From Pelomyxa schiedti (taxonomy: Eukaryota > Protista > Evosea), in contig JAHLWZ010000381.1 in NCBI GenBank assembly GCA_020536535.1, forward strand, positions 35,324 to 99,323: a stretch of DNA of 64,000 nucleotides, read 5' to 3'. This document shows positions 911-63,218 of the stretch, piece by piece. The position numbers and the translations under genes are program-made. Within the stretch, counting starts at the first letter, position 1; every line of letters starts with the position of its first letter. The notes beneath the pieces were generated by a model. That model was not told the DNA's origin and did not search any database. It saw only the letters and a program-made list of their open reading frames with translations.

Positions 911-1043
911 AAATGTGGACAGGTGCAGTGAACAACATAAATAATCGAAAAATCCTTCTTGTTCTGTTACTGGTTCACCTCCTTTCTTTGGTTTTGGGTT
1001 TGTAGTTGTTTTTGTTGAACAATACACGTAGAGTTCAATCAAA

Positions 1044-1767: not shown

Positions 1768-2091
1768 TGGCACCACCAAGAATAATGTTACTGTGGACTC
1801 GCAGCACGGTTATATGTGTCTTCTTAGCTCTCTTTGTCGCTGTTACGGTACGCGCGATCTCCGGCTGCTGACTCTGTAGTTTCTAATTTAACTGAAATTC
1901 AGACAAGTTTCCAGGCAGGTAACTCGAGCTCAGATCTGATCAGAACTGACCAACGTGGCCCACTAGTGTCTCACACTTCCTCCCGAATGTAGTATCCCAG
2001 AAAGATTGCCCTTGCGGCCTGTCCATCATGGGCCCTATCGCCCTTCACCGAATGCAGAAAAACCCGAACAACCAACAACAGCCACGATACG

Positions 2092-8212: not shown

Positions 8213-11200
8213 TCACGGTCGCTGTTCGTCATGGTCCGCCTTTTCCTTCCCCTTGTCTGCCTTTGCCCTCACTGCACCGAGGGAACCACCATCCTCGTTT
8301 TCTTCTTCTTCCTCCTCCTCCTCCTGCCCCTTGTCATTCTCATCCTCATCGTCATCCTCGTCGTGGTGGTGGCGATTGCTCCTTTGCACCCCCCTGGTGC
8401 CGGACGATGACTTGGCGCCAAAGGGCAGGGGCCTTGTGCAGCACCCCACGTGCACCACCATGTTGGGGCACTTTGTGCACCTGTAGTAGTGCTCCTGGCC
8501 GCCCTCGATCAGCCCAGAGCACTGGGCGCACCGCAGTTCCTCGTTGTCTGTCCCTTCCTCCTCGTCGTTGTTGTCGTCGTCGTCTTCATCTTCACCTTGT
8601 GGTTTTGGAGGCGCGGCTTCCTTGAGCTCCAGGGGGTGCTTGTGAGTCCTGACGTTGATCATCGGCGGGAGCGGGGTCGATGCGCCCGAGCACCCGACGT
8701 GGCAGAACGCATGACAGGAACTGCAGAAATAGACTCCGCCTTCTTTGCCCTCACCACCATCGCCACAAGCACAGCACACGCCGCTGAGGTCCTTGGGGGC
8801 CTTGCCGAACTGGAGCGGGTGCTTGTGCTTGCTGTTGAGGATGATCCACTTCTGCGGGTTCTGCGGGTTCTCGAGGCACTCGACGTGGAAGAAAACGTTC
8901 TCGGTGTGGCACTTGTACGCCCACGCGGGTCCCGGTTTTGGCTTGTTGCAGTGGTGGCACGTGAACTCGCCGCTGCTCAGGACCAGCTGCACTGGGTGTG
9001 TGTCTTGGTTGCACTTCTTCCACGTCAGTGGCTTCCCCTCGACGTCGGGAAGTTCCGTGGCTGACAGACAACACCCCACGTGGAGAGTGTGTTTATCCAG
9101 CTTGCAATAATAAAACTGCTCCTGCCGGATGGCCTCGCATTTGTTGCAGGACTCCTCACAACGGCGAGACTTGAGTGAAAGTGGATGAGGGTGTGCCGAT
9201 TCACCTGATTCGAGTACCCACTTTGGGAGTTCATGAGGCTCTCCGGCACACTGTGGGTGGAAATAAACACCTTCCGGTTTGCACACTTTGCACTCGAGTG
9301 CCCAACATGATCCCGGTTTCTCGCACTGGCAACACTGGAAGTCCTTCATGAACACCATTTTCAACAGGTGTGGATGTTCTGCGAATTTCTTCCAGTTATT
9401 TGGCTCTGATACGGGATCGGGAAGTGTCTCATAGGATTGCTTCATAATGCATTCAACCTCCACAAGGTACGCATCTTCACCTTCACAGACAGGACAAGCA
9501 TAATTTTGCCCGGAGAAATATTTACTGCAGAGACTGCACAGAACGTTGCTCTGGGAACCTCCAAGTTTGAGAGGGTGTTTGTGTACTTCAACCTTCACCC
9601 ACTTGGACAAGCCGTGAGGCTCACCAATGCAGGAAGGCTCAAAGTACAGGCCTCTCTTGGGACAGTGATAAACCCAGCCCCCTTGTTCTTTTTTCTTTTT
9701 GCACTGCCCACACTGATAAGAGCCGCTCTTGAATACCAACTGGAGTGGTGTTTCATGTCCGTCAAACATGCTCCATGAGAATGGAGTGTTTGGTTTTGGT
9801 GGTGGCTCTACTTCAGGAGAGTCGAGGCAGACTTCGATCACAAACGTGGAAGAGCATCGTTTGCAGGTATACCCAATGCGGGGACTCTCCCGGTCCAGAC
9901 GAACTGGGTGCTCATCACCTTCGTATAAAATCCATTCTGGCAACTCATAGGCGCCTGATGTGCACCGTGGATGGAAGTCCAGACTGTCCAATTCACAGTG
10001 ATATTCCAATCCCGATCCAGGCTCTGAGCATTCCGAACAAACGAACTGTGGGCTTGACCGCAACTCGAGAGGGTGTTTGTGTGACTTAAACCTCATCCAC
10101 TTGACAGAGTCGACGGACCATGGGAACTTGAGGTGGGCGAAAGCTTTGAAGAGAACATGAAGAGAATGTTTGGCCACCACCTCACCTTGTTGTGGGTTAA
10201 GAACCACGATCGTGGGTTCACCTGTTTGAAGAGAGAAAGAAAAAAACGAATGTGAGGAGGGTCAATAATGAAACAAGAAAGGAGGGAACAGACATGGAGT
10301 GACATCAAACAGATCCACGAGAGTCTCTTGCAACTCCCTTTCGTCAAACTGGAGATGTGACCATCCATTGACATCCCTTGGGGCATTGGTTTTGAACAGT
10401 CTTGCGGAGCGATCACAGGAGATCTCAATGATGGAGAACGTGTTCTTTGGTTGTTCTTGAATGAGAGATTCATACTGCTCTCTTAGAGTTGTTGTGCATT
10501 TTTTGCCCCTTGGATTGGAATAATTCGAGAAGAACAAACCCAGGAACTTGGGCATCTGCTTTGGTTTGCTTTGTGCTGAAGTCCACACTACGGACTTCAG
10601 TTTTTCAACTTGTGCAAGAACGACGCTGGGATCTACCTCCCTCTCCATTTTGAGTGCCCCAATGATTGCACGTGACTTCAGAAGGCTTTTGCTTTCCACA
10701 GTGAGGCCTTTGACTGTTTGCACGCTTGCATAAGCAGCAACAAGAGGCTGCATCGTGTGGCCTGTTCTGTGAACCAAAGTGACATCGATGTCTCTCCAGA
10801 CTCCAGGTTCAACACGAATAAAGTGGATGTCCCTTCCAGCAACAACAACAAGCATGTTGTCACCTGCTGCTGTGAGGGAGAATATCTGTCCGGAAAATGG
10901 ACCCAACGTGAGGACGCACCTCCTTGGATATACCAACTGCCAGAATAAAATCGTTGAGTTTACTGTGGCGATGGCTGCCACTTCACCCTTCAACAACAGG
11001 CACCATGGCCCATCTTTCACTATGGTAATCAGCTTTTTCTCGAAATAGCCTATTTCTTCCCTGGGTTGTTCCTTAAGAAAGTTAATATTAATTTCAGGAT
11101 CACAACTGTTTGCTATTAGCCCCCCACCCAGAACCAGGTTGAGGTCTAATGCGTATAAAATGCGCTCAGTCAAGAATAGCTGAATTCGACTTTCACTGTT

Positions 11201-14200
11201 GGGGAAACCGATTTTGTCGGTCAGATGTTTCCTCACGGAATCATATGAAAAACTGTAGTGCAAAATCTCAGGAGAAATTAATCCATCGGCAGTAACTTCT
11301 GGAAAAATAAAAACAGGTGAGGGATTGGACTCCACTCGTGTAATTGTGTGTGCCTCCTGGTCAATGATCATGGTAATGTTGGATTCCTGGTTGGGGTTGG
11401 TGGTGAGGAGTATCACTGATTTCCAAGACGGGGAGACAACAACCGAGTTCCAATCCACCCTTTGCAGTGGAAGCTTGATTGGTTGCTCTGCTACCAAGTT
11501 TGGTGTTGAAACGCCCCCAGTTTCCATTGATGATATATCATCACCCTCCCTCTCAGGCCCACGGTTTCCTCCAAAAATCAAGTTCAGTACGCAGAACAGA
11601 TTGTGTGGATCCATCGGGATGTCTTGGTCAGAGAAAACAACAAACCTTTCTTCACCAGTTGTGTCTGAGCCTTTGGTGTTGTTCTCTTCAGCTGTACCTT
11701 TCTTTCTTGTGAGAGCAATACCAAGCTTCACAGCCACCTCAGCTTCCTTTGATGGGAAGAAAGCTAAAGCTTTGATGTCGTGCCCGGTGAGTGTATTGTT
11801 GTGCTGGACGACTGCACCGCTGTTTAAATCCCAAACAAAGACAGTGGAGGAGTCACACCCAGCAAGGAACCTTCCATCAGAGGAGAAGCATAGATGTGAA
11901 TTAAGCGTGTTTGCCATGTCGAAGCCATTTGGAAGGGGCAACTTTTTGAGACCATCACTTGTCCACATCTCATGCACAAAACCCCACTCGGGCGATGTCT
12001 CGGCATCCTCCACGTGTTCCCCTCTTTCTTCGTCTGAAGGTGGGTGTTTCCCAGGCTCGGAAGTACCCTTTTCTTTTGACTTGGCTGATGACGAACGGGA
12101 GTGCCGCTTACTGTCAGTTTCCTTTGCTTTTGCTGGCCTCCTTGTGGCTGTCAGTACTTTGGATTTGCAAGCAGCAATACAGTGGCAAGGCCAACTCTCA
12201 GTGACCTGCAGATTTCTGGGCAACGCTTTGATCTCATAAATCTGGGAGTCTCCCAAATAACCAAGTGTGTCTTCACCAGTGAAGAAGCACTTTTGTGCCA
12301 CGTCGCAGTTTACACTCTGCGACTCGACGTGCAGCAACTGTGTCCCAGCAAGAAGCCATGTCCCTTTGGGTGAGAAAGAGAGGACAGAGAAGAATCGAGG
12401 ATCACTGACTTGGTGCTCAAAAAGCATGTGGAATGAATGCAAGTCCTTCTCAGAGAACTCCCACACCGTCACCTTTCCTGTTTGTTTGGAAAATCCGGCC
12501 AGTTTGTTTCTTGTTGGTGACACAGCAAACATTGAAATTCCACTCCCAATGTTCGTGGGTGTGTCTTTTAGTGGCGGTGGGGTGCTTGAGAGTTCCCCCG
12601 GTACCCCCCAGAATGGAGGACTCTTGTTCGTTGTCAGCAAAAGAGAAGACCCAATGAAAAAGTGAGCAAAGCAACCATCGAGGACGTGCTGTGGAAGTAC
12701 AACCACCCCTGCCTGTGCACTCTCTGTAACTGCTGTTGTGGTCTCTTTTACTGAGCCATCAGGTGAAGCTGGGGCGGGCAGGGAAAATATGAACGTTGCC
12801 GAACGTTCTTCCACTTCTTTTGAAATCGTGAGAACAGTGGAATCTGATGAGAAGCAAATGCTTTTGATTACGGCAGCTGACGAACCACATAGAGCTGATG
12901 ATATTCCAGTCTTTGATGATGCCGAACCTTTTTTCAGTTCCATGGATTTCGGAAGGTCGACATTGACGCAGGTATTGGAGGGAATGTCCAGAACCAACAC
13001 AGATTGATGATGCTCTTCATGCACAACCAGGCATATTTTCTTTCCATCAGGAGAGAATTTGCACTGGTCGCACTTAACTTCGGGGCCCACTTCTTTGAAT
13101 TCTAGGTCCTCGTCATTGACATCACACAACAGTGGGTGGCCTTTGTTGCGTGGGCATGCACACAACCTCGTTCCGTCCACAGTCACATCAACGCAGGCAA
13201 GGCCCACACCAAAATCGAAGGCAACCCTCTCATTGAAGCTCACGCCTGTCATGTTGCAGTTTCTGAGGTCGGCACCACACAACCACACCTGCCCCATTTT
13301 GCAGTCACTGAAATCGGCCCTCACCAAATCTGCACCACCAAATATTCCACTGCTCAGGTCTGCACTGTTGATGTGAATGCAACGCAAGTCCACGTTGGAG
13401 AAGTTTTGTTTTCCTTGAATAAGAAGCATCATCGCAGTTGATGCTGCTCTGTCAGCCCTGTCTAACCTCGCTTTGTTGTTGCCGTTGGAACGGTTTGTCC
13501 ACTTTGAGTTCTCAACGAGGAGGAGGAGTGCTTTTCGCAGACTGAATGCATCTTCCACTGCGTCATCCCTCCTCATCATCTCCAGTAAAAATCTGATAAC
13601 GTCGTTGACTTTGACAAGCGTATACTGATTTATAAGGAGTTCTTTTGGATATTTCACAACCTTCGTTCTTCTTCCCTGCTCTTTTGCAGCTTGCATCTTC
13701 CTCAACCTCCTTCGAAGGTCGATAACAACGCTCAAGCTTGGTCTGAAGTTATTTTTTGTGACTGTGTAGTCGACCTCTTCTTCAAGGTGCATCTCAGGCT
13801 TCAGTGTTCTGGAGAGAACCGATTCGCAAGCCTCTTTAACACTGCTGACTTCAGTGGTTCTGCTAGAGCTCATTTCTTCCAGGATGTCAGCTATGACTTT
13901 TTCCTTGTCAATAGAGGAACCCTTCTGTGCCTCAGGGTGGGAGTGAGCCTCTTTGATCTTCTTCATCCATTTGTCAAGACGTTGCCTTCCCCCAATCGCA
14001 GAAAGTATCTTGGCCAAAATTTCTCTGAGTCTCTTGAAATTTTCCTCCTGTTGCTGGTCCGAGGTGGCAGCAGTAGAGGCTGAATCGTCTGTGTTTGTGG
14101 CAGTAACTGTGGAGCTGGTTGCAGCCTTACCAGAAGAGGTGCTTTCGGGTGGGATTTGTTGCTTGGCAACCGCAGTTTCTTCATCACCAGAGGTGGTGCC

Positions 14201-17200
14201 GACAATCGGCGTTGCAGAGTTGCTCTCACTTGGTGTGCTGGTGCTTGGTGGCAACACACGATACTCCAAAAAGCAATCCTTGCAGATCTTAAAGTCGCAT
14301 TTGTAACAATACCAACCATTGGCATCAGGATTCCAAGACTCACGTACAGCTTGACAGCAGTCACATGCCCAACAGTAAGACATGCCCTGAGTAGCCCAGT
14401 CACAGGCGAATTGTGGCATGTATTCCATCTTGTGGTCATGGATAGACACTTCGGCCAGGACAAGAGGAGGGGGATGTGCCATCAGGAGGAGTGCGTCTTT
14501 GTGTTGCTTGAAAATCATTTTAACCCCATAAAATGGATCATCAGCCGGCTCTGAAACATTGTCAGTTGGACCCATCATGGTTTCAAAGAACTTTGTGTAC
14601 TCATCGTGACCTTCCACTGCTGGCAACCACTGGACTTTTTCACTGATTTCCTCAACAATCGCACTCACAATCTCGTGAGCTGTCTCGCGGTAGTTGCTCT
14701 GCATGAACTTTATTGTCTCCCTGCACTTCACTTGCGGAAAGTTCGAGAATGGCATGCTGGAACAGAGTTGGATCTCCTTGTAAATCTTGTAAGCAATGAA
14801 GTATTCCTGAAGCGACTTGTGGAGGAACATGAACGTGTTGGCTCCCTTCTTCTGAACAGGACACCCAGACAGGACGAGTTGGGTGCTCCTGTTCGTGGGG
14901 CTGAAGAACCTCTCGAGTGGGTTGTTCTGATCGATCACCTCGACACCCTGGCTGTTCAGTGTCCACACGGGACTGTATTGAAGTGCTGTCGCTCCCTTCG
15001 TGAACATGAAGATCGCGAGGTTCTCGGAGAACGACCTGAAGTCCTCGATGATGTCACCACCAACCTGGAAGTTGAACTTGACCTCCTCGACGTCGTCGGT
15101 GAGGTGCTGAGTGCACTGTGCCATCCTCTCTGGTGTGATCTTCGACTTTTGCCTCTGGAACCACTGTTCCACGAACCTGTCATAAAGTTCAAGCCTCGTC
15201 AGGTTCGTTGACAGCTCCATCGACAATGCCGGCGCACTGTTTCCGCTGTTGCTGCTGTCGTCGAACCTCTTCCTGCTCCTGTCCTGCTCCATCTGGTCGA
15301 CGAGGGTGGGGAGGATTTCCATGAACATTGTGAGGATGAACGGAGTCCTCAGCAGCTCCTCCACACCTTTCAGGAGTTCCTTGTGTTGGTTGAACAGGTC
15401 CGCGCTTCTCTTGCCCTGAGACCCTCCAAACGTGGAGTATTTTTCGACGTATTCCTTGATTTTGTGCCGTGTGAATGGTTCGATAAACCAGCACAGAACT
15501 TCTGGCTGCTCGGCAACCTGTATGGTTGTGTCTGATGACTTGCCAAGAGGACCACCAACAGAAGGAGGGACTCGCCAGTCAGTTTGAGCGCTTCCACTTG
15601 CTCCTGCCACTGTGGTTGTCGCAGCAGATTTTCCATGCTTAGTGCCGCTGGAACCACCAAGGCAACAGAAACTCTGGAAGAAATTTTGCCCAATCTTCTC
15701 AGGCCTGCTGGACACCAAGACCTGAGAGTGTTTCCAGTCACCAAGTTTGTTGGCTTGGCAGATGTTCACACCAACCTCGAGGGTGATCTCGTCATAACCA
15801 TCGAGGATGAACAACACACGCCTCCCTTCCTTGATTTCATCAATGTTGCTCTGCGAGAACCCAAGTGATGTCAATGCCTCTTGCTTGGGTTCTTGATTGT
15901 TGCAAGTGAGATGAAGATCGGGATGACGTGGCACCTGTCATACGACTCCCACAGGAGTTTTTCCACAAAGTGCCCGAATGTTGACTTTCCAGTTCCACCA
16001 GGACCAACAAGGACAAGTGTTTTGGTTGGCGGTGGGGCTGCGGCTGCTGTGCTTGTTGTCTCTGTTGTTGTTGAAGACGAGGATGAGGAAGAGGAGGAAT
16101 GAGACCTCCCACTGTGGTGGCGATGAGACTGTGACGTGACTGGAGGATCCAGTTTCAGTAATTTTTTGAACAGGGTGTCAGTCAACGGTGGTGTAGCCTT
16201 GTCAAGGACGCCCTCCCTGCAATTGCTTTCAACGTATGTCTTGAGTAGAGTATCGAGCTGTGGATCTTCCAAAGTGCGCTTCCTGAGATCCATCACCTGG
16301 TCATCAACAGAGTCTTTGAGTGTTGCCAACACCTCCGCCTTGGCTTTCATGAACAGTTCTGATGTGCACAAAGAGTCTTCTGCTACCGCGGTTTGCGGTT
16401 TGGTGGGTGGAATCAACATCTTGAACTGGAAAATTGGGTGTATATCGTTGTTGGCACTTACTGGTACCGGCAGTGTGGGAGGAATTGGGTGGGTTTGGAG
16501 GAAAAACAGGAAACTGAGTTTCACCGGGCTCAAGTGTGCCTTTGCCTGTGCTGAAAAGTGTGCATCGCTCTTGTTCAACTTGTCATCAAAGCAACTGATC
16601 ACTTCTGCTGTTGGTCGCTCTTTTGGGCGTGGAGCAGCAAGAGTTTTCTCGGAAAGGAGGATGCGTTCTGCTGGACCAGTTTCCTTGGGTGCAACGTACC
16701 ACCATTGTCCCTTTTCTGAAAGGTAAATCAGTGCCGGGCAATCAATATCGGAGCACGAACTCTCAAACTGGCTCTTCCGAGGGTAACACGCCAACCCAAA
16801 GTTGAGCCCGTTCTTGGTGTCTCTATTTGTCTGGTGTCTTGCCTCCTCTGTTTGGATGAAGTCCATCACTTCTTCCAGGATCTGCCAGGCAGTGCTTCCG
16901 ATCGGAGGAGGCATCGTTGAATACTCACGAAGCTTGATGACCACCATCATCAATCCAACCTCCGAGTTGAAGAACTTCATCAGGGTGCTGTCGCGATAAT
17001 CCTCACCAACAAGAATTCCCTTGAGCTGCGCCAGTGCCCAGTTCTTCATGTCGACGTTGTCGTGGAGCGGTTCAGATTTGATTACGTTGTCGAGGAGATT
17101 GACGTATCCAAGGCTGAAGTCATGTTCACCTTCAATGATCGCATTGAGCTGGCTTGTAATCTCACTCGCTTTCCTTTTGAGAGTGTGTGCTGTGGTTAAT

Positions 17201-18667
17201 ATTGTATCCTTCACCTTGTTGCCTGCTTTAGCCAGTGTACCCATGATCACACCGGGCTTCGCCGAGTCACCAGAGGTTGATGGTGGTTCTGCCGTTGTTG
17301 CCTCCTCTTTTTTTGCCGCATCGGCTTCATCACGCAACTCTTCACTGTGACGAATGCCAACTTTCCTGGACTTGGAGTAAAGACGTTCGATGGTGCTCTT
17401 CAATTCCTTCTGTTTATCTGGATGCAACGGTTTGAGCTCCTTCGAACCGACAGTGAGCTGCCACAACATCAAGTCAATGAAGAAAAGAACATCCATCCAA
17501 GACTTCTTGATGTAAATGTCGGCAACGCACTCCTTCAGCTCTGAGACACAGTTGAAAACCTCTCTGATGTCGTATTGCATGGCCAGATTTGCAATTGCGC
17601 CGACGGCCATGTACGCGTGACCAAGACGGGCGGCGACGTCGGCGAGGGGATCACCGTCATCTTGAATTCGCTGAAGATTCTGCTTGGCAACTTCGGCCTC
17701 TGCGGCGACGTAACACTCGAGGCTCTTGTAATTCGCGTATCGGTCCTTCATCGCCTGGAGGATCCCGAGCGACTTCTTCTTGTCCTCCTCGTCGAGACCC
17801 CTCACGCCCGATGCCCACATCGCTCGGAGCAGCTTGTTGAACCCCTTGAGTATCTGAAACACCCTGTCTGCGTTCTGCTGTTGCGAGTGAAGTGTCTCGA
17901 TCTTCGCGATGAGCATTCGATAGATCACGACGAGGTTCTCCACCGGAATGTGCCGCGACGAGCACTGGAAGAGAACCTCCGCCAGTCCCTCGATCATCGG
18001 AACGTCGAACAGCACGTTCTGGTCGATGGTGTTCGCGAGTGCTGTCACGAGCATCTGGACAACTTCCCCGTCGTCCACCCTCGCAAGCTGTATGATCTCG
18101 CGGATGAGGGCAGGAGTCTTGCTTGGTGTCGAAACGAAGTTGTCGATCATCTTGATTGCCAGACTCTGAAGTGCCCTTTGGCCTACCTTGTCGTTGACGA
18201 CCAGCGAACACATGAACTGTTCATCGGCATCGGAATTCTCCAAATCAGCTTTCGCACCCAAAACAGCCTGGGATGTTGGCACTGGAAAATACTCCGAGAC
18301 GAAGGACTTCGTAGTGTCGAACATCCTTCTGAGGATGTTCTTCTTCACCTCCGCTTTGCCTTCAGGAGCTGGAGTTGGCACAGTTCCGCTTCCCATGGGC
18401 GGAGGTTGCTCGGCGGCCCTCTGGTGCTCAGCAGTCACGAAACACTCGAGCTTGTTGAACCTGTCCTCGACGAGTTTCTCTCGGTTGTATGCCAGTGCTG
18501 CTACCAGTTGTGCTCCTGATGTCACGTTTTGAACTCGCTTCGCGCGAGACTCTTGTGGAGCACTTGGATGTTCTCCTCCTTTTTCATGCGAGCTGCTGTG
18601 ATGGTGGCTTGACGCAGTGGAAGACAGAGCAGTGGACGTTGTGGGGGTGCCTCCCCCATCCGTTGGT
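8213..18667 (-). pseudogene. NLR-like NACHT gene, copy A (Arm-like - NACHT - C1 - pentapeptide - WD40-like - nucleoredoxin-like - 9x DC1); frameshifted
   Basis: ORFs 15871..18525, 10262..15934 and 8213..10207 are colinear with copy B. Walker A GPGGTGKS (15982-16005), Walker B LFILDGYDE, FMFLHKSLQEYF. Intron 10222-10293 joins the DC1 exon in frame. There is a 13-nt deletion at ~15880 relative to copy B and no ATG equivalent to copy B's start. Pseudogene status could be an assembly error. Confidence 0.75.
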
Positions 18668-45100: not shown

Positions 45101-47538
45101 TCGACATATTTTCAATCTCCCGAAGCTTTGAAAAAACGTCGCACTCTTTACTTGAACAGCGCAGTATGAGGGGTCCAGGAATAGGAAGAGCAACCAGACA
45201 TACCTATCTCCATAGTAAATAAAAAGAATTTGGTTCTTCCTATACAGCTGTGCCGGAAGCTACACCAGTTAACATATTACTGCCAATACTGATGTCTATC
45301 TGCAATCGGAAAACAGCATTCATTCCCTATGTCTATTGAGGAAAAGAAAATATGATAGTATGAAAGGTATAAAAAAAAAGGAAGGTGTAAAATAGTAATG
45401 TAAAAGGGCCATAGATACATAAAAATGCAGTTTGTGTACTATCTGTTTGTGCAAGTCGTATTCCAGGAAAGGCAAATCTTCTCTCATATCCACAGTGCTT
45501 TGGTCCCCCTACCAAAAAAGGAAGTGTTATGAACTGTTGAATGTAATTAATAGTTAGGTACCTCGGCTTTTCTTTTCTCTCTACAAATTTTAGCCTCCAG
45601 AAATTTCCCTGTTCCCACAATTGGAGTCTAATATCTCGTTGGCAAATGAGACGAATATAAAGTAATCGAACTTGTGAGGGCAATTCCGTTGTAGAGAGAA
45701 TTATCTCAGGAACGCGTTTCTGCTGACAAATACCACATTTTGAAGTTAGTGGCGCAGCGAGCAGTTCTTCATGTGGTATATGCCACAAGCTACAACTCTT
45801 TTTATGAATGTGTTGTTCTGCATTTGGTCGTTTGACCATAACAACAGCAGTACCAATAGCGGATATGACACAGATCTCTGTCATTCTACGTTACAATCAA
45901 GGTGTTGGTTATAAAGCAAACCTTCTTCTTCATGAATTACGACTGATTCCCTGTATCCAATAACATGCGTACAATGCAGAGCGCGGGCATGGCTCCTTAT
46001 CTCCTCTCTTGCTTCCCCCCACCACCTGTCTCGTGTGAAAGTATACTTCTCCTTTTTGAACATCTTTACTAATCGGGCCTGAAAAGATACATCAGAATGG
46101 AACGAATGGAGATATGATAAGTAACAAGTATACTCAACTGCAACAACACCACCATAATGTCGAATCGCCCCTGGCTCGAAATCAACAAGTGTGAGTAATG
46201 GAATGGTTCCACTGGGAACATCAACATGTCCCACGCCACTTTCGGGAGTGGTTTGGTTTGGGGCACCCCTGAGGGAGTTTCCTGGAAGAGAGCTTGGAGG
46301 TGCTGAAGTGTAAATTGAGGAACTCTGTTCTGGCTGCACAATTTCAGTTTGCGCAATTACATTGCTTGCAGGAGAAATAGGTAGAGATGAGGAGCAACTA
46401 ATTGCCGGGGTAGCAATACTGGTATTCGTACCGAGTGATAGACCGGCACTAACGTTGTTCATTGAAGAGGGAGAACGGGCTTTGCTGTCCAGGTCGAACA
46501 AATAATTCACTGACTTAACTATTGCTGCTGTTCCATATCCACGTGCTACTATGTATACTTCTCGTTCCAAGTCGATGTGTTGGTGATACCCCAGCACTGC
46601 ATTCCCTCCAAGACTTGATACCTTGAGACCTATTTGCCGACGAAGGCGGCTTTTCACAATGGGGATAATTAGAATAACACATGTGAAGAGTCTGTAACAG
46701 CAAAAAAAGGAATATTGAGACTCACCCAGAAAGGCGAATCAAGAGGAGTTGGCGGGCCTCATTAGAGGTACGCGATGTTCGAAATGTGTCAGCCCAATAA
46801 TGTTCAGGGTCGTCTTCCACAAGCAATTCATCAACTAGTCCTATGACAGATGTAACCTTCATACATTTTGGGTCTGGTAAACTACCTGCAGTGTTTTACA
46901 GTATGTATTACTAGAAAGAGAAGGTGTGGGGAAATGTACAGGCAAAAAATCTAACACTGGTGGATGTATCAGAAAAGGGGTTTGTGTTTCTAATCACATT
47001 CAATTTCGCCTCTACCTGCAATTCCCCTCTCACACCTGGAGTTGGAAGTTAGCACTATTTAAATAAAAATAGCTAGCTCTGAACCTCTGAGAGTATCATA
47101 TATTGGGAACCACCCACCCAGTCGTTTTGGAAGGGGGACCAAAAGAGGTGTGAGGTCCAAGTAAACAGTACCAATAACATCATTGGCACTAACAACGTCC
47201 CTATCCCAAACCCTTTTTCGTTTATCAGTATTGAATTGTGCAATATCTTGGGCTGTATGCCATAATCCAAAGTAACAACAAAGGATAAAGAAAAAAAAAA
47301 AAAAAAAAAAAAAATACCGCAATTCCGCGGGTTGGTCGAGTAACACGGCGTCGTTTGCTACCTCGAATTTGAAGTTCGAATTCCACTGGGGATCTAGGGT
47401 TTCAAACTGTGGGTGCGTGCGCCGTGGGGTGGCGTCGTTGAACTTGATCTCCACAAACGCGTCTGCGTTAAGTGTGCGGGCATCCATCACCGGCAGGTTG
47501 CGTGCAGAAACAACCACCAGCTTGAGAGTGAAAGGCAT
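42159..47538 (-). CDS. C2CD5: C2 domain-containing protein 5-like (C2 plus YbjQ-like repeats)
   Basis: MPFTLKLVVVSARNLPVMD...DAFVEIKF...LDPQWNS..FKFEV...GWFPIYDTLRG; LGGNAVLGY..HIDLE; RDRWWGEAREEIRSHARALHCTHVIGYRE; GGNALLNY; ends SVSGDAVRCT*. Confidence 0.87.
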
Positions 47539-52257: not shown

Positions 52258-55200
52258 ATGAGCTCCACAGCACCAGGAGATGGGGGGGCTCACGCTACCT
52301 CCACAACGTCCACTGCTGAAAGGTCTTCCTCCTCATCAAGTCATCACCACAGCAGTTCCCACAGAGACAAAGCAGAACCAAGTGCCCCACAAGAGTCTCG
52401 CGCGAAGCGAGTGCAAAACGTGACATCAGGAGCACAACTGGTAGCAGCACTGGCATACAACCGAGAGAAACTCGTCGAGGACAGGTTCAGCAAGCTACAG
52501 GGTTTCGTGGCTGCTGAGCACCAGAGGGCCGCCGAGCAACCGCCGCCCCCCACGGGAAGCGGGACTGCCCCAACTCCAGCTCCTGAAGGCAAAGTGGAGG
52601 TGAAGAAGAAGAACATACTCAGAAGGATGTTTGACACCGCCAAGTCCTTCGTCTCGGAGTATCTGCCAGAGACCACGTCCAAAGCTGTTCTGGGTGCGAA
52701 AGTTGCTCTGGAAGAGTCGGACGCCGATGAACAGTTCAGGTGTTCCCTGATCATCAACGACAAGGTAGGCCAAAGGGCACTTCAGAGCCTGGCAATCAAG
52801 ATGATCGACAACTTCCTTTCAACACCGAGCAAGACTCCTGCCCTCATCCGCGAAATCGTGCAGCTTGCGAGGGTGGACGACAGGGAGGTGGTCCAGATGC
52901 TGGTGACGGCACTCGCGAACACCATCGACCAGAACGTGCTGTTCGACGTTCCGATGATCGAGGGACTGGCGGAGGTTCTCTTCCAGTGCTCGTCGCGCCA
53001 CATTCCGGTGGAGAACCTCGTCGTGATCTATCGAATGCTCATCGCGAAGATCGAGACACTTCACTCGCAACAGCAGAACGCAGACAGGGTGTTTCAGATA
53101 CTCAAGGGGTTCAACAAGCTGCTCCGAGCGATGTGGGCATCGGGCGTGAGGGGTCTCGACGAGGAGGACAAGAAGAAGTCGCTCGGGATCCTCCAGGCGA
53201 TGAAGGACCGATACGCGAATTACAAGAGCCTCGAGTGTTACGTCGCCGCAGAGGCCGAAGTTGCCAAGCAGAATCTTCAGCGAATTCAAGATGACGGTGA
53301 TCCCCTCGCCGACGTCGCCGCGCGTCTTGGTCACGCATACATGGCCGTCGGCGCAATTGCAAATCTGGCCATGCAATACGACATCAGAGAGGTTTTCAAC
53401 TGTGTCTCCGAGCTGAAGGAGTGCGTTGCCGACATTTACATCAAGAAGTCGTGGATGGATGTTCTATTCTTCATTGACTTGATGTTGTGGCAGCTCACTG
53501 TCGGTTCGAAGGAACTCAAACCGATGCCGCCAGAGGAACAGGAGAGACTCAAGAGCACGATCGAACGTCTTTACTCCAAATCCAGGAAAGTTGGGCTTCG
53601 CCAAGCTGAAGGCCTGAGCAAAGACGTAACCGCTGCTGAGGAAGGAGAGAAATCGTTTTGGCGTAATATTGGCGACAGTGTGAAAAGAAAACTAAGTGAG
53701 GTCAAAGCTCAGTTTGGTGCTATCATTGAAGGTGAACATGACTTCAGCCTTGGATACGTCAATCTCCTCGACAACGTAATCAAGGCCGAACCGCTCCTCG
53801 ACAACATCGACATGAAGAACTGGGCATTGGCGCAGCTCAAGGGAATTCTTGTTGGTGAGGATTATCGCGAGAGCACCCTGATGAAGTTCTTCAACTCGGA
53901 GGTTGGATTGATGATGGTGGTCATCAGCAAGCTTCGTGAGTATTCAACGATGCCTCCTCCAATCGGAAACACTGCATGGAAGATCCTGGGAGAAGTAATG
54001 GAGGTCATCCAAACGGAGGAGGCAAAAAACCAGTCAAACAGAGACATCAAGAACAAGATCGACTTTAGTTTGGCGTGCTACCCTCTGAGTAGCCAGTTGG
54101 AGAGTCCGTGCTCCGAGCTTCGTCGCCCCCGGCTGGTTTACATTTCAGATAAGGAACAATGGTGGTACATCATGCCCAAAGCAACACCAGAACGCATCCT
54201 CCTTTCCACTCTTCCTCCACCACGCCCAAAAGAGCAACCAACTGCAGAGGTGATCAGTTGTTTCGATGACAAGTTGATCAAGAGCGAGGCAAATTTCTCA
54301 GCACAGGCAAAGGCACTCTTGAGTCCGTTCAAGCTCAACTTCCTGTTTTTCATGAAAACCCACCCATCTCCTCCCACGCAGCCGGGGGCCTTTGCTAATA
54401 TCCACCCAATTTTCCAGTTCAAGATGTTGATTCCACCAACGAAACCACAAACCGTGCCACTGGAAGACACTTTGTGCACAGCAGAGTTATTCATGAAAGC
54501 CAAGGCGGAGGTGTTGGCAACACTGAAAGACTCTGTTGATGATCAGGTGGTGGACCTGAGAAAACGTACTTTGGAGGACCCACAGCTCGAGAGTCTGCTC
54601 AAAACATATGTTGAGAGCGATTGCAGGGAGGGCATCCTCGATAAGTCTGCACAATCATTGACTGGCACCCTGTTCAAGAAGTTCCTGAAACTGGAACGAC
54701 CAACCACGTCCCAGTCTCATCGCCATCACAGTGGGAGGTCTCATTCCTCCTCTTCCTCCTCATCATCGTCATCCTCAAAAACTGAGACAACAACCACAAC
54801 AGCCCCACCACCAACCAAAACACTTGTCCTTGTTGGTTCAGGAGGAACTGGAAAATCAATATTCGGGCACTTTGTGGAGAAACTCCTGTGGGAGTCGTAT
54901 GACAGGTGCCACGTCATCCCGATCTTCATCTCACTTGCAACAATCAAGAACCCAAGCAAGAACCTGTTCGAGAAGACATTGACATCGCTTGGGTTCTCGC
55001 AGAGCAACATCGACGAGATCAAGGAAGGGAGGCGTGTGTTGTTCATCCTCGATGGTTATGACGAGATCACCCTCGAGGTTGGTGTGAACATCTGCCAGGC
55101 CAACAAACTTTGTGACTGGAAACACTCTCAGGTCTTGGTGTCCAGCAGGCCTGAGAAGATTGGGCAAGATTTCTTCCAGAGTTTCTGTTGCCTTGGTGGT

Positions 55201-58200
55201 GGTGGTTCCAGCAGCAAACCTGGAAAACATGCTGCGACAACCACAGCAGCCTCCTCAGGAAACAAAACGGCAGGAGGAAGTTCTGGTGTTCCTCTTGGAA
55301 AGTCGTCCACAGTCACCACCAAACAGGTTGCCGAGCAGCCCGAAGTTCTGTGCTGGTATATCGAACCATTCACGAGGCACAAGATCGAGAAATACGTCAA
55401 GAAGTACAAAAAGTGCGGAGGATCACAAGGCGAGAGGAGCGCGGAACTGTTCAACCAACACAGGGAACTCCTGAAAGGTGTGGAGGAGCTGCTGAGGACT
55501 CCGTTCATCCTCACAATGTTCATGGAAATCCTTCCCACCCTCGTCGACAAAATGGAGCAGGACAGGAGCAGGAGGAGGTTCGACGACTCGAACATCAGCA
55601 ACAGTTCATCCGCATTGTCGATGGAGCTATCATCGAACCTGACGAGGCTTGAACTTTACGACAGGTTCGTGGAACAGTGGTTCCAGAGGCAAAAGTCGAA
55701 GATCACACCAGAGAGGATGGCACAGTGCACTCAGCACCTCACCGACGACGTCGAGGAGGTCAAGTTCAACTTCCAGGTTGGTGGTGACATCATCGAGGAC
55801 TTCAGGTCGTTCTCCGAGAACCTCGCGATCTTCATGTTCACGAAGGGAGCGACAGCACTTCAATACAGTCCCGTGTGGACACTGAACAGCCAGGGTGTCG
55901 AGGTGATCGATCAGAACAACCCACTCGAGAGGTTCTTCAGCCCCACGAACAGGAGCACCCAACTCGTCCTGTCTGGGTGTCCTGTTCAGAAGAAGGGAGC
56001 CAACACGTTCATGTTCCTCCACAAGTCGCTTCAGGAATACTTCATTGCTTACAAGATTTACAAGGAGATCCAACTCTGTTCCAGCATGCCATTCTCGAAC
56101 TTTCCGCAAGTGAAGTGCAGGGAGACAATAAAGTTCACACAGAGCAGCTACAAGGAGACAACCCGTCAGATTGTGAGTGCGATTGTTGAGGAAATAGCTG
56201 AAAGGGTTGAGTCAAAGTGGTTGCCAGCAACTGAAAGCGATGATGAACCCACCCAGTTCTTCCGAATCATGATGGGTCCCTTTGCCGAAGTTGATAAATA
56301 TGAATGTGAGGAAATTACAGAGATTTTTGTGGATTTCAAAGACCATTTCCTTGCGATGACGGATCCTCCTCCTCTTGAACTGGCTGAGGTTTCAAACGAC
56401 AAGCACAAGTTGGAACACCGGCGCGGAATGAGATTGGACTGGCTACCTCAGAGCAGGGACAAAAAATGGACATGTAATATTTGCGGCAGTGTGGGCGATT
56501 TGGAGAATCCCGACGACGAGTATTGGCACTGTGGCAAATGCGACTTGGACCTGTGCAAAAACTGTATTTCGAAGTTCCGTGTGTTGCCACCAAGCAAGAG
56601 CACACCAAGTGAAAACAACTCGGGCACAACAGCACCAGTTATCAGCAACACCTCTGGAGACAAAGAAGCTATGCCTGAAAAGCAACAAACAGCACCAGCC
56701 CCAAAAATTTCTACTGACAAGGCTGCAACCACATCCACTGTGCCTGTTACCTCCAGTGCTGTTGTATCAGAAGAACAACAGGAGGCAAATTTCCAGAGAC
56801 TCAGAGGACTGTTGGATAAGATCTTTTTTATTGTTGGGGAGAGGCGGCGTCTTGACAAATTGATGAATAAAATAAAAGAGGCACACTCCCGTCGTCAAGC
56901 ACAATCTTCTCAGGGATGCTCTTTTGACAAGGAAAAAGTCATAGCTGACATCCTGCACAGTATGGACTTGCTTAGGCACAGCGTGAAAGAGGCTTGTGAT
57001 TCTGTTCTCTCGCACACACGGAAGGCCGAGTTGCACCTTGAAGAAGAAGAGGTCGACTACACAATCACAAAAAACAACTTCAGACCAAGTTTGGGAGTTG
57101 TGATCGACATTCGAAGGAGGCTGAGGAAGATGCAAGCTGCAAAAGAGAAGGGAAAAAGAACAAAGGTTGTGAAGTATCCAAAAGAGCTTGTTGTGAACCA
57201 GTCCTCTCTTGTAAAAGTCCACGATGTTGTAAGCTTTTTGTTGGAGATGATGAGGAGGGATGATTCCTTGGCAACAACAGAAGATGCGAATAACAAGGAC
57301 ACATTCAGTCTGCGAAACGCACTCCTCCTCCTCATTGAGAATTCAAAGTGGACAAACAGAAAAATTGAAGGGGGCTCAACAGAAATCAATAGCAGCAACA
57401 AAATGAGGATTCACAGAGCTGACAGGGCTGCATCAACTGCGATGATGCTTCTTCTTCAAGGAAAACACAACTTCTCCAACGTGGATTTGAGGCACATCCA
57501 CATCAACGGTGCAGACCTGAGTGGTGGAATATTTGGTGGTGCCAGTTTGGTGAAGGCTGACTTGAGTGACTGCAAAATGCAGCAGGTGTGGCTCAGTGGA
57601 GCTGACTTGGCACACTGCGACATGACAGGTGTGAGCTTCAACGAGAGGGTTGCCTTCGATTTTGGTGTTGGTCTCGCGTGCGTTGATGTTTCTGCTGACG
57701 GGAAGAGGCTTTGTGCATGCCCACGCAACAAAGGTCACCCACTGTTGTGCGATATCACTGACGAGGACCACGAACTTAAGGAAATCGGCCCCGAGGTTCA
57801 GTGCAATCAGTGCAAGTTCTCTCCAAATGGGAAGAAAATATGCTTTGTTATGTCTGGAGATCAGTCTGTGTTGGTTCTGGAGACTCATGGCAACACCTGG
57901 TTCAACGTTGTGTTGCCAAAATCTACAGTTCTCATGGATGGGAAAAAAGAAAACCCCTCTGCAACAGCCAAGCCCTCGGCAACAACCAAGATTAGTGGAA
58001 TGTCCACAGCTGTGCCCAACGCGTCGTCTTCTGCCACAATCAAAAGCATTTGCTTCTCCGCTGATTCCTCCGTTCTCGCCATTTCCGTTTCCAAAGAACG
58101 CCGGGATGCTTTTGACACATTCATATATTCCCTGACCTCTGCCGCTGCCACTCCAACCACAACATCGACTCCCCCTTCTTCTGCCTTGCAACAACCAGCG

Positions 58201-61200
58201 GCAGTAGCAGCAGCAGCACCGGAGAGCCCAAAAACCACAGGAACAGAAGCAGTCCTGCCACAACATACACTCAACGACTGTGTTGGTCACTTTTTCATCA
58301 AGTCTTCTCTTTTGGTGACACAAAACGCCCCCAATAGCCCCCACTCTTGGTGGGAGGTTCCCGCTGCCGAAAAAACCGGTGCTGCCACGAGCACACCGCC
58401 GCCGCCAAAAGATCCACCAACCAACATTGGGAGCGACATTTCGATGTTTGCATTGTCACCAACAAGAAACAAACTTGCTGGATTCTCCCAAAAAACAGGA
58501 AAGGTGACGGTGTGGGAGTTCTCTGAGAAGAACTTGCGCTCATTCCACGTTCTTTTTGAGCACCAAGTCAGTGATCCACAGGGTGGATTCTCCAAACTCT
58601 CTGTCCTCTCTTTCTCACCCAAAGGGACATGGCTTCTTGCTGGGACACAGTTGCTGCACGTCGAGACCCAGAGTGTGAACTGCGACGTGGCACAAAAGTG
58701 CTTCTTCACTGGTGAAGACACACTTGGTTACTTGGGAGACTCCCAGATTTATGAGGTCAAAGCTTCGTCTGGGAACATGCGGGTCACTGAGAGTTGGCCT
58801 TGCCGTTGTGTTGCTGCTTGCAGATCCAAAGTTCTTATAGTCACGAGGAGACCAGCAGAACCAAAGGAAACTGCCGAATCGGAGAAAACGAGTGCCGCTT
58901 CTTCCTCTGGGAGCAATCCACCACAAGAAGAACACGCAAACGACTCATCCAAGTGGGTTATTGTGCATGAGATGTGGACAAGTGATGGGATCAAACAGTT
59001 ACCACTTCCAAATGACTTCGACGAGGCAAACAAGAAGAATCTGCGTCCTTGTTTCTCGTCTGATGGGAAGTACGTCGCTGGGTGTGATGCCTCGACCTTA
59101 TTCTTGTGGGATTTGAGCAGTGGCACCATGGTCAAACACAACAACACACTCACTGACTTTGAGTTCAAGGCTTGGTCGTTCTTCCCGGCAAAGGAAGGTG
59201 AACCTGTGAAGTTCGGTGTTGCTCTCACAAGAAAGCAAGTTGAAGATGATGCAAAAGAAAAAGAAAAGGAAGATGATGGTGACAGTAAAGAGAGTGAGGA
59301 TAATCATGAAGACAAAGACAATGACAAAGACGAAGACGAAGACCAAGCCAAAGATAAAGACGAAGATGAAGATGAAGATGAGGATGAAGATGAGGACGAG
59401 AGTGAGAATGAGTATGAGAGTGAAGATGAGTCAATTTCAGAAATTCAGGAGGGCAAGTTTTTCTGTGAGAAAGACATTCCAAAAGACCCCAATAATATTT
59501 TCTGTGTGTGGAAAGTGATGGGTGTAGATCCTTGTGAGGCTGTGGAGGAAAATGATGACACTCGAGATTCAGTCGTTTCAACACCGGGTTTAATCTTGGA
59601 GGAGCCAATCAGACTTCCACTGGGAAGAGCTATTTGGGACACCGTCGTTGTGTCTCCATCTTGGAAATCAGTGATACTCCTGGTCACCAACCCCTACAAG
59701 GCTAACTTCATGGTTATCATTGACCAAGAGGCACATACAATCACAGGAACGTTGTCGCTTCTCTCGCCCGTTTTTATTTTCCCAGGAATTACAACCGAGA
59801 GATCGCAAAGCACTTCAATTTTCGAATGCAGTCCCGACTTCGATCCCCACAGAAAGTTGCTAAAAGAAAAGGCCGATCAAGTGCTTGCCGCAAAAGGTTG
59901 TGCGCCAGCCAGTGAAGATCGACAATATTTGTCCTTGCAGGGAGACACTTTGGTTGGCCTGGACCTGAACCTGTTTGGATCTATTACTCTCTTGGAGGAA
60001 CTGGACCTGGAGAATGACAAAGACGCAAAGACAATTGATGAACTGGAGAGTTCTTCCAAGAATGAATATGGTATCTTCGAACGAAGCATGGGTGCCACTG
60101 TCCAAAGTGGCCCATGGTGCCTGTTGTTGCAGAGTGAAGTGGCAGCCATCGCCACAACCAAGTCAACGATTGTACTCTGGAAATTGGCCAGGCCAAAGAA
60201 GTGCTTCCTCACGTTGGGTCCCTTTTCAGGACACATATTCTCCGTTACAGCATCTGGTGACAACATGCTTGTTGTTGTTGCTGGAAGGGACATCCACTAC
60301 ATTCGTGTGGAAAGAAGGCCTGATGGTGATGGGTTCGTTGCAACATTGGTTCACAGAACAGGCCACACGATGCAGCCTCTCGTTGCTGCTCATGCAAACG
60401 TGCAAACAGTCAAAGGCCTGAGTGTGGAAAACAAAAGCCTTCTGAAGTCGCGTGCAATCATTGGAGCAATCAAAATCGAGAGGGAGTTCGATACCAAGGT
60501 TGTTCGACCACAGGTGGAAAAACTGAAATCGAAAGTGTGGACTTCAGCACAAAGCAAACCAAAGCAGATGCCCAAGTTCCTGGGTTTGTTCTTCTCGAAT
60601 TATTCAAATCCAAGAAGCAATAAGTGCACGGCGGACCTTGCAGACAAGTATGAATCTCTCATTCAAGAACAACCAAAGAACACGTTCGCTATCATTGAGA
60701 TCTCCTGTGATCGCTCCGCGAGATTGTACAAGACAAACGCACGAAAGGATATCAATGGATGGTCACATCTCCAGTTTGACGAAAGGGAATTGCAAGAGAC
60801 TCTCGTGGATCTGTTTGATGTCACTCCATGTACGTCCCTCTCTTCTTCTTTTCTCGTTTTTTACTTTTGTTTCCTTTTTCTCTTCAAACAGCTGAACCCA
60901 CAATCGTGGTTCTGAACCAACAAGGGGAGATGGTTTCCAAACATTCGGTTCATGTTCTCTTCAAAGAATTTGCCCACCTCAAGTTCCCATGGTCAGTCGA
61001 ATCTGTCAAGTGGGTGAAGTTTGAGTCACACAAACATCCTCTCGAGTTGTTGTCAACTCCAGAGTTCGTTTGTTCAAAATGTAACGAGGGTGGATCGGGA
61101 TTGGCATATCACTGCCATTTGGACAGTCAGGACTTCCATCCACGGTGCACATCAGGTCCCTCTGAGTTGCCGGAATGGATCTTTTACAAAGGTCATGAGC

Positions 61201-62957
61201 ACCCAGTTCGTCTGGACCAGAAGAGTTCTCCCCCCGAATATCACTGCAAGAAGTGCTCGCACGATGTTGAGCTCAAAGATTGCCTCAAACTGAAAAAGAT
61301 TGATCCGCCACCAAAACCAATATTCTCATGGAGCATGTTTGACGGACATGAAACACCACTCCAGTTGGTATTCAAGAGCGGCTCTTATCAGTGTGCGCAA
61401 TGCAAAGCAACAAAAGAAGGGGACTGGGTTTATCACTGTCCCAAGAGTAACCTTGACCGCGAGCCTTCCTGCCTCGGTGATCCCCACCCGTTGTCCAAAT
61501 GGCTGAAGCTTGAATATCACCCCCACCCTGTCAAACTCACTGAGAAATCGCCAGTGAGCTGGAGTGATCTGCAGTGTAGTATATGCAGGAAACGTTGCAC
61601 CAAGTGGTATTACACCTGCCCCGACTGTGAAAAGTTCTGCGTGGAAGTTGAATGCACTCTGACACAACCCTGTGAGGCACTTCCTGATCCCGTGGTGGAA
61701 CCAAACAACTGGAAGAAATTCCCCAAAGACCCACACCCATTGAAAATGGTGTTCATGAAGGACTTCCAGTGTTGCCAGTGCGAGAAACCGGGATCATGTT
61801 GGGCACTCGAGTGCAAAGTGTGCAAACCGGAAGGTGTTTATTTCCACCCACAGTGTGCTGGAGAGCCTCGTGAACTCCCAAAGTTGGTCCTCGAATCAGG
61901 TGACTCGGCACACCCTCATCCACTTGCCTTGAAGTCGTCTGAATATGGTGGTACATGTGACAAATGTGGTGATGACATCGAAGATACAGAGCAATTTTAT
62001 TATTGCAAGCTCGATGGCCATTGCCTTCATTTGAAATGTTGTCTGTCAGCCACAGAACTTCCCGACGTCGAGGGGAAGCCACTGACGTGGAAGAAGTGCA
62101 ACCAAGACACACACCCAGTGCAGCTGGTCCTGAGCAGCGGCGAGTTCACGTGCCACCACTGCAACAAGCCAAAACCGGGACCCGCGTGGGCGTACAGGTG
62201 CCACACCGAGAACGTTTTCTTCCACGTCGAGTGCCTCGAGAACCCGCAGAACCCGCAGAGGTGGATCATCCTCAACAGCAAGCACAAGCACCCGCTCCAG
62301 TTCGGCAAGAACCCAGGGTTCCTCAAACCCAAGTGCTGTGTGTGCAACAGCGACGGCGACATGGATGCGCAGGTGTACGTCTACTTCTGCGAGAGCTGCA
62401 ACGACTGGTGCCACGTCAAGTGCATGGAAGGGTGCGTGCCGCCGCCGCCGTTGATCAAGATCAAGAAGCACCAGCACCCCCTGGCGTTCGTGGAGGCGGC
62501 CCCGCCCAAGCCAGAGGGCGCCGACGACGACAACAACATCGACGGCGACAGCGACGACGAGCGCGCGGCCGCCGCGCAGTGCGACACGTGCTACGGCGAG
62601 ATCGCCGGGGAGCAGCACTACAAGTGCACAAAGTGCCCCGCTGTAAGGCACATCGGGTGCTGCTCCAAGCCCCAGGCGTTCGACCCCCTCGCCCCCGTCG
62701 GTGACGACGAAGACAGTAGCAGAAAGGGGAAGACAAAGGCCGATGCAGACAGTGACGACAGCGACGATGACAGCGACGACGATGACGAGGACCACGGGTC
62801 TCAAGAGCAGTTTTTACTAGCGGCAAAGATGCGCGCCATAGAAGCCAGATATGCAACTTCCCAACATCTCCATGGCCACCAGGCTGAAGACTCCAAGGCA
62901 GACAAAGGTAAAGACAAGGCCGAGGATGAAGCCGACTCCAGTGCCAGTGACGACTGA
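52258..62957 (+). CDS. Giant NLR-like STAND protein, copy B (intact, ~3545 aa): Arm-like - NACHT - inserted C1 - pentapeptide - WD40-like - nucleoredoxin-like - 9x DC1
   Basis: Exon 1 (52258-60829) plus exon 2 (60892-62957) total 10638 nt, or 3546 codons, across GT..AG intron 60830-60891. Walker A GSGGTGKS (54835-54858), Walker B LFILDGYDE, LVSSR, RTPFIL, FLHKSLQEYF; ADL pentapeptides ~57470-57640; repeated FSPxG motifs; HxHPL/CxxC repeats. Confidence 0.9.
59250..59430 (+). repeat. GAA/GAT/GAC-rich simple repeat encoding an acidic D/E tract
   Basis: gaagatgaagatgaagatgaggatgaagatgaggacgag...; in frame within copy B. Confidence 0.8.
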
Positions 62958-63118: not shown

Positions 63119-63218
63119 NNNNNNNNNNNNNNNNNNNNNNNNNNNNNNNNNNNNNNNNNNNNNNNNNNNNNNNNNNNNNNNNNNNNNNNNNNNNNNNNNN
63201 NNNNNNNNNNNNNNNNNN
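63119..63218. other. Assembly gap (100 N)
   Basis: Run of exactly 100 N. Confidence 0.99.

Follow-up and report, generated by a model that had tools for sequence, protein, structure and literature searches.

A giant NACHT protein of Pelomyxa schiedti with a predicted redox-dead tail apparently derived from the amoeba's own nucleoredoxin

NLR-like STAND receptors (NLR, NOD-like receptor) have been studied in animals, plants, fungi, and bacteria, and those of free-living protists are poorly known. Previous work described NACHT-PPR-WD40 NOD-like receptors that are common to Mortierellomycota and the endosymbiont Mycoavidus and left their role in the symbiosis open (Ciach et al., Evol Lett 2024, PMC11291939). 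In plant NB-ARC NLRs, thioredoxin (Trx) and C1_2/C1_3 are each recurrent integrated domains, and Trx and DC1 (C1_2/C1_3) proteins are listed among the Arabidopsis proteins that interact with pathogen effectors (Sarris et al. 2016, PMC4759884). Here we describe gene A, which lies in a 64,000-nucleotide stretch of the genome of Pelomyxa schiedti (Archamoebae, Amoebozoa). This stretch, the window, corresponds to C381:35324-99323 in an assembly of 52.4 Mb and reaches the end of its contig.

We found that gene A is an intact, two-exon, selectively maintained P. schiedti gene that is predicted to encode a NACHT-class STAND NTPase of 3,545 amino acids (aa). From N to C terminus, its domains are an ARM_5 solenoid, the NACHT module, one DC1, pentapeptide repeats, a WD40-like beta region, a Trx fold, nine DC1 modules, and an acidic tail. 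A Trx-like domain on a NACHT chassis occurs at four loci in the genome: gene A, paralog B in the same window, and genes on contigs C663 (Pelo_8394, cut by the contig end) and C42. The original prediction, which was made from the DNA alone, had placed the window in a probable amoeba, and this was correct, as paralog B is NCBI Pelo_4669 of P. schiedti. Taken as a whole, gene A may best be explained as an NLR-like NACHT switch with a captured nucleoredoxin tail and a role in surveillance, an explanation that draws on analogy and to which we give slightly better than an even chance.

The NACHT assignment, including the modeled NBD-HD1-WHD-HD2 fold of the nucleotide-binding and oligomerization module (NOD), is solid. 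The Pfam NACHT profile scored 27.7 bits against the whole protein and 32.1 bits against the module alone (cut-off, 26.7), and it matched 41/41 NOD modules in an alignment of gene A with 40 relatives. Walker A, Walker B, sensor-1, and the WHD histidine motif are all in place (Table 1), so the NACHT motifs are intact, as had been predicted; a further motif, TPFILTMF, lies at aa 1081-1088, and all five motifs fall on columns of the alignment that are invariant or nearly so. With the NOD region as a single sequence, phmmer gave no match in PDB, and the profile built from all 41 sequences found NLRC4 (2.6e-7), NLRP9, NLRP3, and NLRP1 there. Consistently with this, an AlphaFold2 (AF2) model of the NOD (pLDDT, 83; pTM, 0.77) had NLRP9, NLRC4, NLRP2/7, NOD2, and NLRP3 as its top Foldseek matches (E of 4e-9 to 1e-6, probability of 1.0, approximately 440 columns). 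The prediction that gene A encodes a repeat-bearing STAND protein of the NLR-like NACHT kind is supported. An exhaustive search with the NOD returned 1315 representative relatives at E<=1e-3. By analogy, the NOD of gene A probably works as a nucleotide switch.

We found that the C-terminal part of gene A resembles a nucleoredoxin of the amoeba itself. The Thioredoxin_8 profile matched at 34.3 bits and nine DC1-like modules lie in exon 2, in agreement with the predicted Trx-fold domain and nine Cys/His fingers, and the Trx domain of the spliced, annotated paralogs matched tryparedoxin II end to end (1.7e-7). The P. schiedti genome has stand-alone nucleoredoxins on contigs C802 and C68 (three Thioredoxin_8 domains and then one DC1) and a further Trx gene on contig C823. 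The tail family is collinear with the third Trx domain (Trx3) and the DC1 of the C802 nucleoredoxin over 190 aa (31% identity, E=8e-20), and the alignment includes the FPW motif and the HxHPLEL...CxxC...YHC...HPxC finger. The original prediction had proposed that redoxin and DC1 modules were gained; this held, and their source can be traced to the amoeba's own nucleoredoxin. We concluded that the last Trx and the DC1 of that protein were apparently fused to the C terminus of the NACHT chassis and that the DC1 was multiplied to nine.

The tail also differs from nucleoredoxin. Nucleoredoxin, including the C802 and C68 proteins, has three Trx domains, WCxPC, and one DC1, whereas the gene A tail has one Trx domain, SNPRS in place of the WCxPC active site, and nine DC1 modules. 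The C802 nucleoredoxin retains intact WCPPC and WCGPC motifs, and SNPR(S/G/T) is found in 4/4 paralogs. Since CxxC is missing in all four, the loss of redox function would be older than the divergence of the paralogs, with the fold retained. To judge from its sequence, the Trx of gene A is redox-dead and the tail is no reductase, and without WCxxC gene A would not be a functional nucleoredoxin.

The two parts are joined by a single splice. Gene A comprises two overlapping open reading frames (ORFs) on the + strand in different frames, 52258..60915 (2885 aa) and 60828..62957 (709 aa), and the first open frame reaches 21 codons upstream of the gene A ATG (2906 versus 2885 aa). The intron, with GT at 60830 and AG at 60891, is pyrimidine rich and splits a codon as T|CT; no other T-rich tract that looks like an intron occurs in gene A. 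When joined, the exons give 2857 + 1 + 687 = 3545 codons with no internal stop, and the predicted frame of about 3545 aa after a single splice is thus borne out by a 62-nt GT..AG phase-1 intron. We searched the gene A exons separately and used the database proteins of paralogs, P0001 (Pelo_4669) and P0005, for tests across the junction. GT..AG is at the same place in 4/4 tail-bearing loci, with conserved exon sequence on either side and divergent sequence within the intron. The intron lengths of the four paralogs differ modulo 3, and there are in-frame stops in the introns of paralog B and the C42 paralog. The first two thirds of the Trx fold are encoded within the uninterrupted 2885-codon ORF; the fusion to the NACHT-repeat body is therefore independent of splicing. 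Exon 2 provides the cis-Pro strand (EPT) and the remainder of the fold, and in the spliced, annotated paralogs the Thioredoxin_8 profile was covered from position 2 to 93 of 94, with higher scores. The NCBI models of two paralogs connect the same two exonic parts. On these comparative grounds, the splice and the fusion in gene A are very probably real.

Gene A has this one intron in 10.7 kb, located in the nucleoredoxin-derived part; the P. schiedti genome mean is 7.43 introns per gene (PMC8887013). A single intron would fit a bacterial-type, intron-poor chassis. The C802 nucleoredoxin has no intron at the gene A position. In the Trx-repeat gene on contig C823 (C823:92000-95500, minus strand, around 1845-1880 of that segment), a phase-1 intron precedes the gene A position by two codons, relative to the cis-Pro, so that the C823 and gene A introns are close and their positions are not identical.

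We calculated dN/dS, the ratio of nonsynonymous to synonymous substitution rates, by domain (Nei-Gojobori) for gene A against paralog B, the C663 paralog, and the C42 paralog. It was 0.08 to 0.56 everywhere, including 0.23 to 0.27 in the Trx fold and 0.23 to 0.49 in the DC1 arrays. Since dN/dS is below 1 in all domains, both exons are constrained as coding sequence. The dead Trx is still under purifying selection. The synonymous divergence (dS) between gene A and paralog B is very uneven, rising from 0.09 (ARM_5) through 0.18 (NOD) and 0.30 (Trx fold) to 0.73 (propeller region). A mosaic produced by gene conversion between the inverted paralogs, which are 34 kb apart, would fit this pattern.

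The chassis that carries the tail has known relatives. The best NOD matches outside Pelomyxa were from Mycoavidus cysteinexigens, Glomeribacter, Mortierella, Modicella, Cetraspora, and one metagenomic bacterium, at 29 to 37% identity and E down to 1e-55, and these proteins carry ARM_5, NACHT, pentapeptide, and/or WD40 domains. The order ARM_5, NACHT, pentapeptide is the same in gene A and in proteins P0009, P0014, P0002, P0003, and P0011. Domain content and order thus assign the chassis to the known NACHT-PPR-WD40 NLR-like family of Mortierellomycota, Glomeromycota, and the Burkholderia-related endosymbionts Mycoavidus and Glomeribacter, the function of which is putative in its own right. That family has the same ARM_5, NACHT, pentapeptide order as gene A, followed by WD40 where gene A has its WD40-like beta region. 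In contrast to it, gene A is amoebozoan and about twice as long, its WD40-like region is highly degenerate with long inserts, and it adds a DC1 after the NOD, a nucleoredoxin-type Trx that is predicted to be dead, and nine C-terminal DC1 modules. A chassis of early-diverging fungi and endobacteria is thus also found, expanded and intron poor, in an anaerobic amoeba with cytosolic prokaryotes.

The chassis is used modularly in Pelomyxa, with phosphodiesterase, C2, or nucleoredoxin-derived additions. Protein P0003, from another contig, has the ARM_5-NACHT-pentapeptide-WD40 chassis with a C-terminal 3'5'-cyclic nucleotide phosphodiesterase (4e-51), and P0011, also from another contig, has the same chassis with a C2 domain at its start. 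NCBI calls each of them an "NB-ARC domain protein," but what they carry is NACHT.

The full architecture was found only in Pelomyxa. We searched 5.8 billion proteins with a word index that relies on shared 5-residue words, by which distant cases could be missed, and found no fused architecture outside Pelomyxa. For the tail, the only long proteins found were Pelo_4669 and Pelo_8394. For the DC1 array, two weak matches were found among mid-size proteins, both to DC1-domain proteins and one of them from a plant. The original prediction had matched the combined architecture to no described protein. This stands for the fusion, within the reach of such a search, and does not stand for the chassis, which had already been described (PMC11291939).

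Features of the N-terminal region in an ESM Atlas search gave weak HEAT/TPR-like alpha-solenoid leads, all below 0.9. The predicted pentapeptides were confirmed by Pfam (33.5 bits against a cut-off of 20.2); NCBIfam gave weak pentapeptide-family matches only, and the AF2 model shows a strand every 5 residues. The region after them holds Ser/Thr/Pro-rich inserts and an acidic insert (59269-59448). Pfam WD40/beta-propeller matches were sub-threshold (E of 1e-5 to 1e-3 between aa 2053 and 2308 in gene A, and 7.8e-07 in paralog B). When two beta regions were aligned by hhalign with a canonical WD40 propeller, only single blades matched, with probabilities of 10% and 0.7%. An AF2 model of aa 1700-2760 (1061 aa, 7-row alignment) was all beta with a pLDDT of 45. 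Of the predicted WD40-like repeats, then, a likeness to single blades, e.g., around FSSDGKYVAGCDASTLFLWDL, and the all-beta model stand, and Pfam matches above threshold or an hhalign probability beyond 10% were not obtained. Pfam found no LRR in gene A.

Table 1. Features of gene A and position of paralog B in the window
Feature	Position	Residues (aa)	Strand	Basis or remark
Exon 1	52258..60829		+	2857 codons and first base of split codon; starts at first ATG after in-frame stop
Single intron	60830..60891		+	62 nt, GT..AG, phase 1; within Trx-fold domain, one residue before cis-Pro motif EPT
Exon 2	60892..62957		+	Two bases of split codon, 687 codons, TGA stop at 62955-62957
ARM_5 (ARM-like alpha-solenoid)	52762..53427	169-390	+	Pfam, 8.9e-17; 1.3e-17 in a second search
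NACHT NOD module (NBD-HD1-WHD-HD2)	54790..56157	845-1300	+	Pfam NACHT at aa 855-939; broken by a low-complexity loop
Walker A, GSGGTGKS	54835-54858	860-867	+	Translation; G, G, and GK columns invariant in the 41-sequence alignment
Walker B, FILDGYDE	55036-55065	ending at 936	+	D88, D91, and E92 invariant in the 41-sequence alignment
Sensor-1, VLVSSRPE (SSRP)	55132-55155	959-966	+	R120 column nearly invariant
WHD His motif, FLHKSLQEYF	56014-56043	1253-1262	+	H411 column nearly invariant
Extra DC1/C1_2-like zinc finger between NOD and pentapeptides	56431..56568	1392-1437	+	26.7 bits in genome search, over the cut-off
Pentapeptide repeats	57466..57645	1737-1796	+	Best Pfam stretch at aa 1738-1776, 33.5 bits (cut-off, 20.2)
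Degenerate WD40-like all-beta region	57655..60537	1800-2760	+	Sub-threshold WD40/beta-propeller matches, single-blade hhalign, low-confidence model
Tryparedoxin/nucleoredoxin-type Trx fold (Thioredoxin_8), split by intron	60574..60995		+	Pfam at aa 2773-2856, 34.3 bits (cut-off, 27)
Nine DC1 (C1_2) Cys/His zinc-finger modules	61026..62663		+	Pfam C1_2, 4e-32, five significant stretches; nine by pattern count
Acidic low-complexity C-terminal tail	62691..62954		+	Translation; fastest-diverging part of gene A
Paralog B (Pelo_4669), same architecture	8213..18525		-	99% identity of Pelo_4669 to the window

How might such a protein work? By analogy with solved NLRs, gene A would rest as a closed, ADP-bound monomer that is kept shut by its C-terminal repeats. 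A ligand or partner that binds at the propeller, the dead redoxin, or the zinc fingers would free the NOD, nucleotide exchange and oligomerization through the NOD would follow, and the clustered N-terminal ARM-like domains would recruit downstream factors as the output. Because the Trx is redox-dead, the tail is best read as a putative binding module (a bait or a sensor) rather than as an enzyme. Numerous prokaryotic endosymbionts live in the cytosol of P. schiedti (PMC8887013; the paper does not mention NACHT), which makes this a plausible setting for surveillance. The likeliest setting, and the least certain step of the model, is one in which gene A would survey the cytosol of an endosymbiont-rich amoeba for non-self such as intracellular bacteria. 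The immune role that the original prediction proposed, or a role in conflict, is, on analogy, a serious possibility that we nonetheless regard as doubtful.

A narrower version of the surveillance model is that gene A is an independent amoebozoan "integrated decoy," in which a NACHT receptor of bacterial type would protect the redox hub nucleoredoxin by means of a dead copy of it and a DC1 bait array. The expanded DC1 array would then trap factors of intracellular bacteria or viruses. Capture of a host redox protein, together with its inactivation and its retention under selection, is what typifies a bait domain. Even so, we consider the decoy quite unlikely. If it were true, it would represent convergent integrated-domain immunity outside plants and would mark nucleoredoxin as targeted by intracellular microbes; otherwise, gene A would still illustrate cleanly how a giant STAND protein can capture a domain.

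Several observations weigh against surveillance. The domain searches of gene A recognized no death-fold, TIR, nuclease, pore-forming, or other killing or effector domain. No positive selection was seen at the domain level, as dN/dS was below 1 throughout the three paralog comparisons. Tail-bearing copies number four and other chassis copies a handful, whereas immune NLR repertoires are typically large and hypervariable. The C-terminal phosphodiesterase of a sister paralog suggests that the additions may be outputs and not sensors. The WD40 propeller assignment is weak. Finally, the animal NACHT-WD40 proteins TEP1 and NWD1 are not known to be immune receptors.

Gene A could instead be a nonimmune, regulatory STAND scaffold. 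According to this model, the NACHT switch would organize a housekeeping complex, e.g., in redox, lipid/membrane, or cyclic-nucleotide signaling, and the dead Trx and the DC1 array would be localization or partner-docking modules on the output side. The sister paralogs with a C-terminal phosphodiesterase or an N-terminal membrane-binding C2 domain point to signaling outputs, and purifying selection in all domains, the small size of the family, the lack of a recognized cell-death or effector domain, and the nonimmune roles of animal NACHT-WD40 proteins such as TEP1 and NWD1 are all in keeping with a scaffold. However, the closest described relatives have been treated as NOD-like receptors that possibly act in host-endosymbiont interaction (PMC11291939). 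Mosaic divergence between tandem paralogs, as in gene A and paralog B (dS, 0.09 for ARM_5 and 0.73 for the propeller), is seen more typically in genes involved in conflict, and a STAND sensor fused to a catalytically dead copy of a host protein bears the mark of an integrated bait (PMC4759884). We regard the scaffold as unlikely, and we continue to favor an NLR-like switch with a captured tail.

It is far less probable that gene A is a silent or decaying copy in an expanded family, with no present function. In favor of this, the neighboring paralog B is missing 13 nt relative to gene A in the NACHT region near 15880 (15840-15925), between Walker A and Walker B, which shifts the frame. The two ORFs that result overlap (15871..18525 and 10262..15934, minus strand), and the Pelo_4669 model starts downstream, without the ARM_5 region and the P-loop. 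Paralog B could be a young pseudogene, or the frameshift could be an error, as the assembly was made from whole-genome-amplified single cells (PMC8887013). The C42 paralog (C42:6043-14661) is more divergent, with approximately 58% aa identity, and its shorter tail retains about four DC1 modules, in part degenerate, with a long Ser-Arg repeat at the end. Gene A itself, however, has 3,545 stop-free codons and intact catalytic motifs, and dN/dS stays well under 1 in every one of its domains.

It is hardly credible that an adjacent NACHT-repeat gene and redoxin-DC1 gene were misread as one: although the protein searches returned the paralogs Pelo_4669 and Pelo_8394 and no entry for gene A itself, two thirds of the Trx fold share one uninterrupted ORF with the NACHT and beta regions, exon 2 is needed to complete the fold, the GT..AG site is common to the four paralogs with intron lengths that differ modulo 3, and the NCBI models join the same parts in two of them.

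The surroundings of gene A are eukaryotic. We rejected bacterial contamination as a source of the locus, given the spliceosomal intron, the Roco-kinase and other eukaryotic genes on the 99-kb contig, and the adjacent annotated P. schiedti paralog. Next to paralog B, at 20018-24240 on the minus strand, are ORFs with COR-A, protein kinase, and WD40-like matches that are probably one Roco-family (LRRK-like) kinase gene. Between the paralogs are ORFs at 27426-28220 (-), 35104-36042 (+), and 45881-46657 (-), with GHMP kinase, glycosyl hydrolase family 3, and YbjQ_2 (C2CD5-like) domains. Downstream of gene A is a 100-N scaffold gap at 63119-63218, and the sequence from the gap to 64000 is a near-identical copy (95.7% at the protein level) of the end of gene A, comprising its final ~206 codons and the 3' flank. 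The end of gene A and this copy break off at an identical point (...ggtgaaagatg), where the gap cuts one and the contig end cuts the other. The copy looks like an allelic or paralogous end that was placed by the RNA-based scaffolder of the assembly (PMC8887013). If the scaffolder did join it, this would be an indirect hint that RNA read pairs map here.

Beyond the fungal and endosymbiont family and nucleoredoxin, gene A can be compared with three described systems. The animal NLRs (NLRC4, NLRP3, NLRP9, and NOD2) have in common with gene A the NACHT motifs and the predicted NBD-HD1-WHD-HD2 fold over approximately 440 columns; their sequence identity to gene A is only 11 to 15%. Unlike them, gene A has no CARD, PYD, BIR, or LRR, and its sensor region instead has pentapeptides, beta blades, Trx, and DC1. 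In the human NLRP1-thioredoxin complex (PDB 7wge), which was among the fold matches of the NOD model, the state of a NACHT protein is coupled to a Trx fold. There, thioredoxin is a separate, redox-active partner, whereas in gene A a putatively dead Trx is covalently part of the protein, and a functional analogy between the two would be speculation.

Plant NLRs with integrated domains (NLR-IDs) (PMC4759884) are like gene A in that a STAND receptor bears a copy of a host protein domain. The stand-alone host counterpart is present in P. schiedti as the C802 and C68 nucleoredoxins, with which the tail is collinear. In contrast to gene A, which has NACHT and no LRR, plant NLR-IDs have NB-ARC and LRR; gene A could thus work like an NLR-ID and is no member of that group. 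Its Trx is also of the Thioredoxin_8 (nucleoredoxin) type, unlike that of plant NLR-IDs, and is fused together with its own DC1, which is amplified ninefold. The likeness of gene A to plant NLR-IDs is convergent, not homologous.

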